Assembly: GCA_047495785.1 (NCBI GenBank) | Contig: JBLDXI010000103.1 | Location: forward strand, 124,001-188,000 | Source of the DNA: Lepidodermella squamata | Lineage: Eukaryota; Animalia; Gastrotricha | Reading direction: 5' to 3' | Length of the DNA stretch: 64,000 nucleotides | Shown here: positions 23,688 to 31,155 of the stretch, piece after piece | Position numbering within the stretch: the first letter of the stretch is position 1 | Layout: each line of letters opens with the position of its first letter | The notes under the pieces: model-generated | Seen by the model: only the letters and a program-made list of their open reading frames with translations | What the model was told of the DNA's origin: nothing | Databases searched by the model: none | Program-made: the position numbers and the translations under genes

Positions 23688-26600
23688 TCAAGTACGGATA
23701 ATGCCTTGGTTGCCCTGAGGCCGTTGCGGCCGGCCGCCTGGGGGCTCGGTTGGAGGCGCAGCCGGCGTCGTAGTCTCAGGTTGCGGCGGCGCCGCGCCAC
23801 GCGACGGAATCAACCCCTCCGCCTGCAGCAGTGCCAAATTGCCAGCAGCCAACGCAGCGACCTCGCCAGTCGTCAACGGCAGGTTGCAAATCAGCACGTT
23901 ATCGATATTGCCGACAAACGCGCCCAGCACTTGATCATCGCCGACGACGTACGGGCAGTGGGCGACTGCGGGCGGGCCGTTCAGGGTGTCGCTCGCCAAC
24001 AATACGCCGTTGACGTAGAGCTCGAGCACAGAGATTTGCTGGTCGTAGACAACGCAGGCTGACTGCCAGCCGTTTGCGACCGGGGCGTTGATCATCATGG
24101 CGGATTGGTTGGTGCGCACGTTGCCTTGCAGGTTGTTCGTGCCGTTGATGCCGGCGATGATTGTGTACAGCGTTGCAGCGGCGCTGTTGCTGTTCGACAA
24201 AATACCGCCGTTTGTGTTGCACGAGTACGGAGCAGTTGTGCCACAGCTAAGTTGACAAGAAATAGAATAAAATTACAGTAGGACGAATTTTCTCAATTTT
24301 TTGAATGTGACCAGTTGAATCGGTAATACAGCCCCATAAGCAGGGTGCGATCTTGGATCCCCGAGCTGCCAGGGATGGAAAATATTTTTTGCTGCATTTG
24401 CCAAGATGACTAGTCATTTCGGCTAATCACCGAGCTAAGCGAGAAAATTTTGGAGATTTTCCGCTAAAACACGCTCCAGAACCAGAACCTAAGTTCTGGG
24501 ACACGTTGTTTTAAAAAATCTCAATCTGTAGGTCAATTTTTAAATCAAATATTTTGTAGGACAAATTCGAACAAGTCGAGTTTGAACAAAGGACCTTTCC
24601 GAACTTTCAGATGAATAGCTCTGTGGAAACCAAAAATATAATGAAATCGTCAATTTAATAATTTGAAGTTTTTCTAAAATTTCTCGAAAATAATAAAAAA
24701 TTTGGAAATTTCAAGTTAGGTTTCCCAAACTATATCGTAATGCAATCGGTGTAATATTATTGAACTTGATAATTGCTCGGGAAGCTTCTCCTTTTTAAGA
24801 ATCAGATCAATCGCCGATCAGCCGATAGCAAGCCTGAAGCAGAAAAATTCTACAAATTCTGCAAAAGTTGTAGATCGGAATTTGCGATAGAAAATAGCCC
24901 ATGGAATTTCAAAGACATTGAAATAATGATTAATCGGTAGATGTCAGTATCACAAGTACCACTAATACGCTCTGGAATTTTTTTGAGTATTTATAGTTGA
25001 GATCTTACCGGAAAGAGAAGCACCATGAAGCGCCCTGGGGGTTGCTCAGCTGGAAGCTCTTCAAGCCCGGAATTTCCAGCCGGCCATCATTGACGAACAA
25101 CGACCCGCCAGGGCTATTCACCGTATTAGCCGGGTCGAACTGAGCGTTGCCGTAGGCGAAGGTCGACAGCTGGTTGATGGACTGATCGGCTAGGCTGGTG
25201 TCAAACGGCATCCAGAGCGAGCACTGGCGCCCTGAGGAGGCGACGACGTCGGGCGCCGGCGGCAGGACCACTGAACAAGCGCACTCGATTAGGCTGAAGG
25301 TGGTACCAGGGGCACAGGGCAGGTCGTAGTCGCCCAGGCGGAACGCGTCCGGGCGGTCTGGGTTGGCAACCAGGATGTTTCCGAAAGAATCAGTGCAAGC
25401 CGTAGCGTTGCTCGTTGGCGCTTGGGTGACCTAAATTTGAAACACGAAAAAAGGGAATTCATTTTTGTGACAAAATTTGATTGAAAATTTTGAAATTGAA
25501 TTTGAAAATTGAACTTGAAAATTGAATTTGAAAATTGAACTTGAAAATTGAAAATTAGAAATTGAAATTTCGATTTTGAATTTTAGGTACTAATTTTGAA
25601 ATTACAGGGTTTTTTATTTTCAATTCAATTAAAAGAACTTGTTGAAAATTTCAATTTTTCAATTTCAAGATTTTCAATTTTCAAATTTTCAAATTTTTCA
25701 TTCAATTAAAATATCGAAGGGAAGATTAATGAATTTTGAATTCAAATTAAATTTTTTTTTTATTTTTCAAATTGTAAAGAATTATAAGGCATGTTTTACC
25801 TGAGGTAAAGCGAGGCAGAAATCTCGGCACGACAAATCAGCGACGCAATCGCACGTATTGGGCTGATAGCGGTAGCCAGTCGGGCAACAGCGAGTTTCAT
25901 TGAAGGCGCAGGTGAAGAATTGGCGGCACGATTGGCCGGGGATTTGGTAGCACCCGACGGCGGCGATGGCCGGGGTTTCGCAGGGTGACGGCTGGCACCG
26001 CACCGGGCCCTCGACTTGGCACGCCAGGATCGATTCATCGAAAAATGTACCAGGCGGGCAGAATTTCAACGTTGCTGAAGCATTGTTAGCATCCAGATAT
26101 TGACACTGAAAAAAATTCAAAAATTCAAATTCAAAAAAATGAAAAAGAGGAAAATTGAAATTGGTCATCACATAAAAAAAATGGAATAGGTAATTATTTT
26201 TCGGCGGAATTTTCGAATTTTCAATTTTACGAAACTTGCGAGTCACTTTTCTAAGATGGCCTTGAAAATGGATTTCAAGAAAATACGCAATATCTTCAGT
26301 TGCTGAAATAAGTTCTAATTTTTGGATTAAAAATCTCGAACATTGAGAGGAAAAAATTAAAATCTTTTAAAATTTAAAAAATCAATTTAAAAATTCAATC
26401 TGCCAAAATTTTTCAAAGTTAAATTTAAACGAGAGTTTGGATGACCTTAGAAATTATGATTTTTTTGGAATATTTCTTACCTGAAAGTAGCTGTGGCAGT
26501 CGAGGGGATTGATGAACAAGTCCTTGACGTTGGTTCGCATCAAGCAGTCGAAGCAGTAGTCATTCGCGTTGAACCCAACGTCATTTATCGGGACAGGAAC

Positions 26601-26699
26601 AGGCAGACCGGCCGTGGTCGTTCGTGGCCGGCCAAGCGTGAAGCCAACCAAGCATGACGAAGCGACTAGAAAAACTGCTAAAGAAAATAAATTCTTCAT
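23688..26699 (-). CDS. Divergent paralog of the ChtBD2 + LamG protein, copy E; exons 26699-26481, 26105-25800, 25430-25009, 24246-23688, 501 aa
   Basis: Colinear similarity (YCFDCL, NPLDCHSYFQC, CPPGTFFD, CSLWMPFDTSL, GRLEIPGLK, HCPYVVGDDQ). Three GT-AG introns give a continuous frame; the last sits at the same phase-2 position as the intron in A-D. Confidence 0.87.
25480..25705. repeat. Intronic degenerate (TTGAAAATTGAA)n tandem tract followed by its inverted counterpart
   Basis: Repeats at about 25480-25570 and complementary TTTTCAA repeats at about 25650-25705, inside intron 2 of copy E. Confidence 0.55.
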
Positions 26700-27249
26700 T
26701 TTGAAAGTATCAAATGCGACCAATTTCGCAATTTTTATAAGATAAAAGCAAATTTTATGAGCTTTATATCAATTTTTGCGTCTAATTGGCTAAGGCTCAG
26801 CAGCAATTAGAGTCGAGAATTTCCATGGCGTAATAATTTTGAATGAAACTGTTGACATCGCCAAGTTCATATAAGGCATTATTTCGACTTTAAAAAATTA
26901 ATGAAAATCTGAATTAAATATGTTTGCTAAATTTTACACAATTTGAATAAAAATTTCTGAATTTTTTACGATTTTCCGATTGATTGAATTCATTTAAATT
27001 TTTTATTTATAGACGCCCGAGCAGCACCGCCTTGTCCATAACCAGTTCGCCGATGAATTCAAAATATATTATTCCACTCATCCGCTGGTAAATGAAAGCC
27101 TATACCATAAAATGAGCCCAAACAAAACACAGGAAATACATGAATAACAATTGAGCAACTCCTAAACACATCGTCGCGGCTATTTTGAGGCAGCAACTGG
27201 GACATTACATCTGAATTAACAGCTAAATATTTTCAGACAAATTTCAACT

Positions 27250-28629
27250 ATGGGTGGAACACATTTTCACTCGGTTTTCGTTCTTGTAATTTTTCTATTC
27301 GGCGCTGTGAATGTTTCGAATTCTTTACGAATAAGGCGAGAGCATTTCAGCCACTTCAATACCGATGACCGAGCTGCGGTGCCTGTGCAACCCATGTGGC
27401 CCTCAATGGGCGACGAGAATTTCCCATTTCCGTGCAATAATAGGGACGCCATGCCGAAACACATCGAGGAGGTGTTTCATCTAACGAGCGATCCGCGAAA
27501 TGGCGTTGTTTGCTGGCACAAGCAAAAGCTGAGCGCTGACCAGATCGAAGTCCGCCTGTACCAGACATACGCTGGCTATCGCATCATAGGCGAAGAACGT
27601 AAAATTTCGTTTTTAAATTTTCAAATATTCGTGAAACTGCGCTCCTGTGCGCTGATTGGTGCGGCATTAGTGCGTGCGCAATAATTGCGTCGCGCGCTCA
27701 TTGGCCAGATTCGAAACACCATTTATTGCGCGCGCACTAATGCCAGGTGAAAAATCCGCGCACACTGGGTTATCGTTTCACGCGTTTGTCAAAGGTCAAA
27801 TTTCGAATACCTTGGCGGTTTTCGTACCGAAATTGAGATCACAAAAGTTCTCATTGGATGAAATATTTTTTCATCTTTTTCATCTTTTTTCATCTTTTCA
27901 TTTGATGCGACCTGAAAATTTCGGACTTTAAAAACAAATTATCCTAATTTTGAATCCTTACTCCCTTACACGAGCCAATATTCGAGATATTAATTTTTTT
28001 ATTTGTTATTCACAGCGTTGGTGGCGTATTACAATCCGAGAACAGGTGCGTGGTGGCATACTGCTGGAAGCCGAGCTGTCGATATTGAAAATGACGCACG
28101 TCGGCTGATTAGCGCCTCTATACCGCCTCTTCAGCCCTCAATCGATGCATGTCGCGCCGCCTTGAACATTCCTCAAAACGTAAATAAGTTGCTAATTTAG
28201 AAAATTATGATGTAGCTGGACTGAAAATCATAACAGTTCTAAATTTCAAATTTTAAATAAATGTTTGCACTTCGAAAAAAGGAAAAATAATTGGTTATTT
28301 AGGTTATGGCAGGAATTTCCAATTTATTATATTTTAATTTTTTTGAAAAAGGATGAAGTTGAAATTGATGTCAGCCGGGCTATTCGCTTAGTTAGCCGTA
28401 ACGAGCATCAGTACAACGATGGAACGCCAATGTCGGCCATTTTCGCCGATATCGTCACGCTTCACCGGCGCGGTCGTCACATAGCCGGGCGTCAGTGCAC
28501 GTTCGATGCAACTCGAGGAAAGGTGATTTCATTTTAATTTCAATGACTAAAAATTACTCTTAAAATTGACATTTCGCCAATTTTTAGATGCTTCAATACC
28601 GGATTCAACCGCGTTCGATCGAGGAATAA
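27250..28629 (+). CDS. Secreted 241-aa protein resembling an FTP + PepSY (M4/M36 peptidase propeptide) without catalytic domain; exons 27250-27598, 28016-28179, 28352-28522, 28588-28629
   Basis: Signal peptide; three GT-AG introns give a continuous frame. EVRLYQTYAGYRIIG resembles the FTP motif and FDATRGKML resembles the PepSY terminal motif. No HExxH. Confidence 0.65.
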
Positions 28630-28816
28630 CAGTTTAATACTGCATTATCGATTTACATTAAATTTGACTATAGTATTGTCTATAACAGATCCAGCTTTGA
28701 TTTGTTCCTGTTTTTAATCAAATAATAAAATTTAATTACGAAATAGCAAGATTTTGCAAATATAGGAAGAATTGGGTTATGCGAACAATCTGTTATTAGG
28801 GCTATGTGAGCGCGGA

Positions 28817-28946: not shown

Positions 28947-30720
28947 ATGATCCGATCATCGATTGTAGTAGCTTTTGTGATCGCCGGTTGTCTTGATGCG
29001 GCGTTTGCCCGCGATCGCACTACAACGCGCCGCGCCCCGGTCGCTGGCCCACCTGCTCCGAACAATCCTAACCCTGCGCCTGGGTTCGACGCGAACACGT
29101 ACTGCTTCGACTGCCTGTCGCGCGCCGCGCAGAAGGACTTCTTCGCGAACCCGCTCGACTGCCACTCGTACTTCCAGTGCCTGTACCTGAACGAGACGAC
29201 GGCGACGGCCATCTTCCAGGTGTGCCAGCCGGGCACCTTCTGGGACGAAGCTCGCCTGACGTGCCGCGCCGAGGGCCCAGTGCCGTGCCAGCCTTCGCCG
29301 TGCTCGAACCCGACCATCGCCGCTGCCGGCTGCTACCAACTGCCCGGCCAAGGCTGCCGCCAGTACTTCACGTGTGGCGCCACCGGCCAGGAGACTGTCA
29401 ACTGCTGCCCGTCTGGCGAGCGCATCGACGTCGCAACTTGCACGTGCGTGCCGGACGAGACCTGCACCGGCTTCTGCCTCGCCCTGCCCCAGACCACGGC
29501 CGCCCCAGCGAGTCTGAACGCGAGCGCGTGCTCGGACGCCTTCGGCAACACCCTGGTGGCGCTGCCCGACCGCGAAGACGCGTTCCAACTCGGCGACTCG
29601 ACGCTGCCCTGCGCGCCCGGCACCGCCTTCAGCCTCGCCGAGTGCGCCTGCTCCGTCGTGCTGACGACGCCCGAGCCGCCGCTCACTGGCTCGAATGCCC
29701 GCCAGTGCGCCCTCTGGCTGCCTTTCGACACCTCCCTCGAGGACCAGTCCGTCAACCGCTTCCCGACCTTCGCCTACGGCAACGCCCAGCTCGACGTGAC
29801 CGCCTCGGCGACTGGCACCACTGGTGGCTCGCTGCAGGTCAACACCGGCCGCCTCGAGATCCCCGGCCTCAAGACGTTCGAGCTCGGCACAGGCGAGGGT
29901 GCTTCGTGGTGCTTCGAATACCGGTAAGACTATATTACATGACCGATGGACTCTACTAAAACTTTCGTTTACTTTTCAAAGTTGCAACGTCGCCGCCCCG
30001 TTCCAGTGCACGCAATCGGCCGGCGTGCTGTCGAACAACAACAACGCCGCGGCGACGCTGTACACGCTCATCGCCGGCGTCACGCCCACCGACAACGTGT
30101 TCGCGAGCCTGCGCTCCGACTCGGGCGCCTCCGCCAACCTCACCGCCCCGGCGCCGGCGACCAACGGCGGCTGGACGGCCGTCTGCGTCGTGTTCAACGC
30201 GACCGCGCAGCTCGCCGAGCTCTTCGTCAACGGCGCCCTCGTCGGCAGCGCGCCCGCCGCCGGCCCGCTCGCCCTCGCCCACTGCCCGTACGTCGTCGGC
30301 GACGACCAGGCCCTCGGCGCCTTCACCGGCAACATCGACAACGTCCTCGTCTGCAACACCGTGCTCACCGGCGAGGAAGTCGCCGCCCTGGCTCAAGGCA
30401 ACATTGGTGCGCTGCAGACGGCCGGTCTCATCCCGGGTGGCCAGCAGCCAGCCCAGCCGACCACTACTGCTGCGACCGAAGCTCCGCCGGCCGAAGAGAC
30501 CACCACTGCCCCTGTTCAAGGAGGTCGCACTACCCGCCGCCCCATCGCCCAACCGACTCGACGTGGCCCTATGACTCTGCCCACTCGATCTCCGCCCCAA
30601 GGTGGATCCCGCACTACCACTCGCCGCGCGCAAGCCGCCAATCCCACCACCCGCAACCCCCATGCTGGTCATGGCCCGCGTCCTCAGCCTGGCACCCAGG
30701 GTGTCGTCCGCGAGCATTAA
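28947..30720 (+). CDS. Secreted ChtBD2 + LamG protein, copy D; exons 28947-29923 and 29982-30720, 571 aa
   Basis: A-type leader (SIVVAFVIAGCL..PPAPNNPNPAP), C-type 58-nt intron, unique longer C-terminal tail. Confidence 0.87.
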
Positions 30721-31155
30721 TGTAAACTCGCAATATGAATACCGAGAACTTATGATAAACTAATTATGATCCATGATACTGTTGGTTCTTTTTAATTGAT
30801 AATTTATGAAGTATTCTTTCAAACTAAGTGATTTTCACCCATCGCTTTCCAGGTTCTTGAAATGAATAAATCTGAAATTCCAGAAGTTTTTTCGGACTTG
30901 TTTGGCCATCAAAAAATGGGGCATATAAATTTCCTCTGATGTCGTCGTAAAATTGATAATAACCCCCTGTACTATCTGGTGTATCCGCAGTGTAGTACAA
31001 TTTTTTTGAACACGAGTAGATAAAATAGCCGAGCCATTACTGCGTGCATTCATTTAGTTATGGGCGCAATAGCAAGATAAGAGAAATTTCAAAACATTTC
31101 TTTTTATTCAAGAGATAGTTACTCACCATTCTACCAAAATTGTTGCCAGAAATCA

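Follow-up and report, generated by a model that had tools for sequence, protein, structure and literature searches.

Does a small gene of the gastrotrich Lepidodermella squamata encode the propeptide of a thermolysin-type metalloprotease, living on as a gene of its own? The gene lies at positions 27250-28629, on the forward strand, of a 64,000-nt stretch of contig JBLDXI010000103.1 (hereafter the window). The initial annotation read its product as a signal peptide followed by an FTP and a PepSY domain, the pair that forms the propeptide of bacterial M4 thermolysins and fungal M36 fungalysins, and proposed a horizontally acquired propeptide now secreted as an inhibitor of microbial proteases.

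Structure of the gene, its product and its neighbourhood

The coding sequence of 726 nt is spliced from four exons, all on the + strand, with GT-AG borders at every intron and intron phases 1/0/0. Exon 1 (27250..27598; 349 nt, ending in phase 1) carries the signal peptide (27250-27324), two conserved cysteines (in FPFPC and VCW) and the first half of the FTP-like motif. Intron 1 (27599..28015; 417 nt, 38% G+C) is followed by exon 2 (28016..28179; 164 nt), which contains the second half of this motif, a linker and a PSIDACRAAL segment with the third conserved cysteine. After intron 2 (28180..28351; 172 nt, 23% G+C), exon 3 (28352..28522; 171 nt) supplies the fourth cysteine and FDATRGK, and intron 3 (28523..28587; 65 nt, 23% G+C) separates it from exon 4 (28588..28629), which consists of 13 codons and TAA. 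The exons are richer in G+C (45-54%) than the introns (23-38%) and the flanks (31-33%). The FTP-like motif (residues 98-135, 27541..28071; QIEVRLYQTYAGYRIIGEE / PLVAYYNPRTGAWWHTAGS) is thus split by intron 1, and the C-terminal FDATRGKML motif (residues 222-230, 28502..28593) by intron 3. The three introns within 27250-28629 confirmed the intron-containing gene that had been proposed, and we reproduced its spliced product, with the signal peptide, the strings quoted from it and a stop 11 residues past FDATRGKML.

This product is 241 aa long, followed by the stop, and contains four cysteines and no HExxH. Removal of the signal peptide is predicted to leave a secreted protein of ~217 aa, and the N-terminal hydrophobic core is typical for a signal peptide both in the window protein and in its metagenomic homologue on contig L001, described below. 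The four conserved cysteines probably form two disulfides. Between the signal peptide and FPFPC, the window protein has ~34 extra residues (25-58, encoded by 27322-27423). This N-terminal extension is missing in L001 and is therefore lineage-specific; it is probably also disordered.

Upstream of the ATG, by 13 nt, a polypyrimidine-AG acceptor read from the sequence (27230..27236, + strand) is a candidate spliced-leader trans-splice site, and a comparable AG acceptor is found 2 nt 5' of the ATG in L001. Candidate poly(A) signals lie downstream of the stop at 28657..28729 on the + strand (ATTAAA at 28657 and AATAAA at 28724). The content of sequencing runs in words of this region was also compared. 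Of the words of 27200-28700, 26% occur in run X1, a run guessed to be RNA that is not listed as containing intron 1; the DNA-like run X2 contains 59% of them, and 55% of the words of intron 1. This pattern is compatible with a spliced transcript, though not proof of one. Intron 1 further contains a near-perfect hairpin of ~82 nt (27663..27744, no strand assigned), present in a single copy in the window, with 25-nt arms that are 92% complementary and a 32-nt loop. Rfam gave only sub-threshold pre-miRNA-like matches for it (mir-95, at 24.8 bits where the cut-off is 67.5). The hairpin may be processed from the intron into a small RNA, or may have arisen as a small palindromic insertion.

The gene is flanked on both sides by genes for secreted proteins with CBM_14 (peritrophin-A) and Laminin_G_3 domains, one upstream (23691-26723, - strand) and one downstream (28947-30722, + strand). 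These two neighbours are divergently oriented paralogues, and additional copies occur elsewhere in the window. The lack of an HExxH domain in the product, already pointed out in the initial annotation, was borne out and extends to the surroundings: HExxH is absent from every stop-free stretch of at least 80 aa in the whole 64-kb window, and the stop codon of the gene is conserved in L001. Nor does the gene splice onward to a catalytic domain, the next gene downstream having its own ATG and signal peptide and encoding CBM_14.

A narrow family under purifying selection

An exhaustive HMMER search of 1.84 billion representative proteins, with mature exon 1 as the query, returned seven proteins. 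The sole true relative among them is P0003 (85 aa, E 1.3e-8), an ORF formed by exon 1 of a homologue that lies on L001, a 3.3-kb ENA metagenome contig. On L001 the coding sequence is split between two exons, at 604-856 and 920-1299; its product, of 210 aa, has 51% amino-acid identity to the window protein and keeps all four cysteines; the best-conserved part corresponds to window exon 3 (74% identity). Its single intron falls in the same codon (Pro) and in the same phase as window intron 1. Exon 2 of L001 is colinear with the window gene and unbroken across the sites of introns 2 and 3, neither of which it has, and this confirms the two corresponding joins in the window gene model. Gene copies ~96% identical in DNA are present on two more contigs, L002 and L003, beside the same intronless cytochrome P450 gene.

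Between the window and L001, pS is 0.85 (saturated) against a pN of 0.31 overall and 0.18 in the C-terminal part. L001 shares the stop codon with the window, and the conservation of sequence extends to QPRS, three residues short of the stop. The gene is real and is kept under purifying selection. Since intron 1 is shared and the synonymous sites are saturated, it is also an old, resident gene.

The family is very narrow, and comprises Lepidodermella squamata and one other eukaryote seen in metagenomes. A word-indexed protein search with the exon-1 ORF gave no match, and no additional relatives came from a word search of 5.8 billion clusters or from JGI metagenomes, GTDB genomes and plasmids, whether the query was a single piece or a profile of two sequences. 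No prokaryotic, fungal, plasmid or metagenomic (JGI) relatives beyond the two eukaryotic sources were thus found in the collections searched.

The six other proteins returned by HMMER (P0001, P0002 and P0004-P0007) were rejected as relatives, their scores being sums of many weak repeats. Three of these proteins (P0001, P0002 and P0007) are built of ~60-aa repeat units (…EEILTYIKSPRNGSVCYFSSKLDV…), each repeat having ~39% identity to window residues 64-97. This local similarity, of the form PRNGxVC…KL, is curious, though we judged it to be a repeat artefact.

The P450 gene adjoining the homologue is intronless, encodes 506 aa and lies only ~80 nt downstream of the homologue (L001 1377-2897, - strand; L002 983-2503, - strand). 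The L001 contig is very gene-dense, and its one intron measures 63-66 nt. Together with the AG acceptor near the ATG, this density and the short intron point to a small, compact eukaryotic genome. The CBM_14 neighbourhood of the window is not kept in L001-L003. A role in protecting the flanking matrix proteins, also put forward at first, is therefore unsupported, since the neighbour there is the P450 gene in place of a CBM_14 gene.

Likeness to M4 propeptides

We compared the family with curated models. The Pfam FTP model (PF07504) has a gathering cut-off of 21 bits. It gave no match, at E up to 10, with the window exon pieces or with a 56-aa peptide that runs across the exon 1/2 junction, and the single window exons and this junction peptide matched nothing in Pfam and NCBIfam as a whole. 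In L001, exon 1 scored 15.7 bits against FTP (E 0.014) and the 56-aa junction peptide 17.4 bits (E 0.0042). FTP is the only Pfam family matched by the homologue among 24,736 models (per-model p ~2e-7, with the score below the cut-off). The alignment spans profile positions 13-33, at the very motif named in the initial annotation, where the hairpin core v-R-x-x-Q-t-Y-x-G-x-p-V-x-G is represented by VRLYQTYAGYRIIG in the window and by VHLYQTYNGYRIVG in L001. For PepSY (PF03413), a domain of ~60 residues that combines a helix with a beta-sheet, neither window exon 3 nor the uninterrupted 125-aa piece of L001 gave a match in Pfam or NCBIfam. Verified bacterial M4 propeptides score 41-60 bits for FTP and 29-31 bits for PepSY in Pfam. 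A genuine divergent M4 enzyme (L009) reaches only 18.0 bits for FTP, and a genuine Streptomyces propeptide (L006) is also missed by the Pfam PepSY model. Sequence searches of the PDB produced chance matches only (ulvan lyase, Kelch, Skp1) and no solved M4 pro-enzyme, and ESM Atlas feature searches with exon 1, exon 3 and the C-terminal part of L001 gave nothing useful.

Structure prediction was limited to exon-bounded pieces. The model of the N-terminal 66 aa (pLDDT 66) consists of a short helix and a beta-hairpin, and that of the C-terminal 125 aa of L001 has a pLDDT of 37.5. The ESM Atlas's own model of this C-terminal part has a pLDDT of 0.41, and a structure search of the Atlas with it gave TM values of at most 0.37. 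Foldseek found nothing at E <=0.001 with the exon-limited models. A wide VIA-align search with these poor models gave a best Z of 3.3, which is noise by the tool's own calibration; its top rows contain many small BLIP-like, PepSY-like and cystatin-like alpha/beta proteins, and list no M4 pro-enzyme.

Propeptide profiles of our own were scored against the full-length spliced proteins of the window and L001. M4 genes were fished from plasmid records with a 40-aa thermolysin active-site segment that served solely as bait; the records were identified by their annotation, and 5 of the 14 propeptides were also checked with Pfam. With a whole-propeptide profile of nine propeptides, the window protein scored 12.8 bits and L001 16.3 bits, values reached by none of 1000 shuffles. 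With 14 propeptides the scores were 7.4 bits (E 2.2e-4) and 11.0 bits (E 1.7e-5), reached by none of 5000 shuffles and to be set beside 5.3 bits for the best of 458 window ORFs; p-values for the window are subject to a look-elsewhere effect, because the gene was picked for its motif, and the homologue is not independent of the window. Taken alone, the FTP block gave 5.0 bits for the window and 7.9 bits for L001, scores that 6 and 1 of 5000 shuffles, respectively, attain. For the PepSY block, the window scored -1.0 bits, attained by 896 of 5000 shuffles, and L001 0.4 bits, attained by 626. The terminal FDATRGKML does resemble the vDAxtGxvl end of PepSY, a resemblance that has no statistical significance by itself.

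The order and spacing of the motifs were compared as well. In hhalign, the two-member family aligned colinearly with the propeptides along 134-138 columns that extend from the FTP core as far as the terminal DAxxGxxL, with P 2e-4 and a probability of 45% for nine propeptides, and P 1.8e-3 and a probability of 15% for 14. FTP and PepSY occupy 57-102 and 119-194 in the L008 prepro region, and the corresponding motifs of L001 are located at ~64-104 and 123-201. Where the window and L001 differ at aligned positions, both remain compatible with the profile (+13 and +14 bits, permuted residues giving about -15 ± 7 bits), a figure inflated by conservative substitutions and by alignment optimisation. 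Profiles restricted to Gammaproteobacteria, Bacillus or Streptomyces gave 5.0, -1.4 and 1.7 bits for the window and 5.3, 3.7 and 5.6 bits for L001. A particular closeness to vibriolysin-type propeptides, which we considered, is unsupported, the bacterial subgroup profiles scoring similarly weakly.

As a control, genuine propeptides were scored with profiles from which their phylum had been left out, and gave 15.5-41.6 bits for FTP and 9.2-42.3 bits for PepSY. The same profiles gave 3.4-9.7 bits for FTP and -1.3 to 1.0 bits for PepSY with the window/L001 family. If the family descends from a propeptide, it would therefore have diverged far beyond the divergence of bacterial phyla among themselves, and its PepSY half would be beyond recognition. 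The two domain assignments of the initial annotation thus fared differently. For FTP the result is borderline: the homologue reaches 17.4 bits and the scores with our own profiles exceed those of shuffles, but the homologue stays below the cut-off and the window protein has no match. The PepSY assignment did not hold, with no match in Pfam or NCBIfam and -1.3 to 1.0 bits (p ~0.1-0.2) with our own profile. Judged by these scores, the likeness to propeptides is faint, and it is too weak to establish a borrowed protease inhibitor.

Possible origins, function and known counterparts

FTP and PepSY are mostly microbial modules, and this general knowledge would favour a gene from a bacterial or fungal contaminant, or one transferred horizontally very recently. 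The gene nevertheless contains three spliceosomal introns, one of them common to the distant homologue, and sits amid intron-bearing animal genes, and no prokaryotic or plasmid relatives were found in GTDB genomes and plasmids. We consider contamination or very recent transfer extremely improbable. Horizontal acquisition as such, as proposed at first, is neither borne out nor contradicted by the collections searched, and the shared intron and saturated synonymous sites indicate long residence. The layout of the protein stops exactly where a catalytic domain would be expected to start, as it would if the locus were only the 5' end of a larger gene, or what is left of a decaying M4 or M36 protease gene, with the catalytic exons at another place or no longer present. 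Against such a partial or decaying gene, the stop and the preceding QPRS are kept in L001 despite saturated synonymous divergence, poly(A) signals are present no more than 100 nt past the stop, the downstream gene has its own start and signal peptide, no HExxH ORF occurs within 64 kb, and pN is far under pS, contrary to what a pseudogene would show. This explanation is very improbable as well.

Two readings of the intact gene remain to be weighed. The protein may be secreted and lineage-specific, its fold having no relation to that of propeptides; VRxYQTYxGxxI and DAxxGxxL would then be chance or convergent beta-hairpin motifs, and the function would be unrelated to proteases, for example that of an extracellular matrix or cuticle-associated factor. 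The matrix or cuticle suggestion comes from the CBM_14 and Laminin_G_3 genes on both sides. We give this reading close to an even chance. It agrees with curated thresholds that neither the window protein nor its homologue reaches, with a PepSY part at the level of noise and an FTP part far under true cross-phylum members, and with the empty result from ESM Atlas features. It also agrees with a family whose only true relative in 1.84 billion proteins is an exon-1 ORF of one other organism; and with p ~2e-4 any proteome should yield a few matches by chance, and the gene was chosen by its motif. On the other hand, FTP is the single Pfam match of 24,736 models for the homologue (p ~2e-7), the three motifs are colinear with propeptide-like spacing in a protein that ends where a propeptide ends, and residues that differ between the window and L001 still suit the profile; a matrix role in particular is weakened by the CBM_14 neighbourhood not being kept in L001-L003. 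The FTP match, the colinear motifs and the fit of the differing residues argue for the other reading, in which an FTP-bearing metalloprotease, of the M4 thermolysin or the M36 fungalysin type, gave rise through its prepro region to this stand-alone and by now very divergent family. We hold this reading tentatively, at somewhat less than an even chance.

Under propeptide ancestry, the family would have retained the ancestral layout, namely a signal peptide, an FTP-type beta-hairpin, a P-x-I-x-A-C-R-x-A-L helix and a C-terminal DAxxGxxL hairpin, and the protein would end at the point where the catalytic domain once began. M4 propeptides chaperone and inhibit their enzymes in trans. By analogy with them, and with stand-alone propeptide-like inhibitors of other protease clans, the product may act as an inhibitor or chaperone. 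It would bind an M4-type protease outside the cell, and either keep the enzyme inactive or aid its folding. The partner could be a microbial protease or an M4 enzyme of the animal itself. A more specific proposal is a split system, in which domesticated bacterial-type M4 metalloproteases would be controlled in trans by a small, fast-evolving, stand-alone family derived from their propeptides. We think such a split system unlikely; if real, it would be the first propeptide-derived family of regulators or inhibitors for the thermolysin clan, and in an animal. Should propeptide ancestry prove false, the gene would still define a conserved secreted orphan family with a fold beyond current prediction, a result of modest interest.

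Among known systems, the nearest are the M4 precursors themselves, whose pro-forms have been solved for MCP-02 (3NQY/3NQZ), pro-elastase LasB (8CR3, 9GM4) and thermolysin (5A3Y). Like an M4 FTP+PepSY propeptide, the window protein has a signal peptide, a hairpin of the VRxxQtYxGxpV.G type, a P..s...A...A helix and a terminal DAxtGxvl; its total length equals that of a prepro region, and its profile and hhalign matches are weak but colinear. Unlike M4 precursors, the family has no catalytic domain downstream. It also differs from M4 propeptides in its scores (3-11 bits, against 15-42 for genuine members, with an undetectable PepSY part), in its four conserved cysteines and in its spliceosomal introns, and its likeness to them is one of sequence.

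A second comparison concerns dedicated inhibitors of M4 enzymes. Genes annotated as 'protealysin inhibitor emfourin' adjoin M4 protease genes on a Nostoc plasmid (L007, 3371-3676) and on a Hymenobacter plasmid (L018, 1606-1920). This pairing is how bacteria provide an M4 enzyme with an inhibitor protein of its own; insects likewise have a protein inhibitor of M4 proteases, the metalloproteinase inhibitor IMPI. As small blockers of thermolysin-type enzymes, emfourin and IMPI would share the function proposed for the window protein, but they differ from it in sequence and in domain type, and the Pfam and NCBIfam emfourin models gave no match with the window gene.

In the literature, we found no description of a stand-alone FTP/PepSY animal protein, nor of a propeptide-derived inhibitor of M4 or M36 enzymes. 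For other clans such proteins have been described: a stand-alone subtilisin-propeptide-like (I9) protein inhibits Plasmodium SUB1 (PMC6993865), and stand-alone cathepsin-L-propeptide-like (I29) proteins exist (PMC6010012). The I9 and I29 proteins belong to serine and cysteine protease clans, are clear by sequence and have measured inhibition, whereas in the window family the sequence likeness is faint and the inhibitory role putative. What the family may share with them is the concept of a propeptide module that has become an independent gene acting in trans. If its propeptide ancestry is true, it would be, as far as we could find, the first M4/M36 propeptide to persist as an independent secreted animal gene, offering a testable handle on how an animal controls thermolysin-type proteases, its own or microbial, in parallel with the stand-alone propeptide-like inhibitors of subtilisins and cathepsins.
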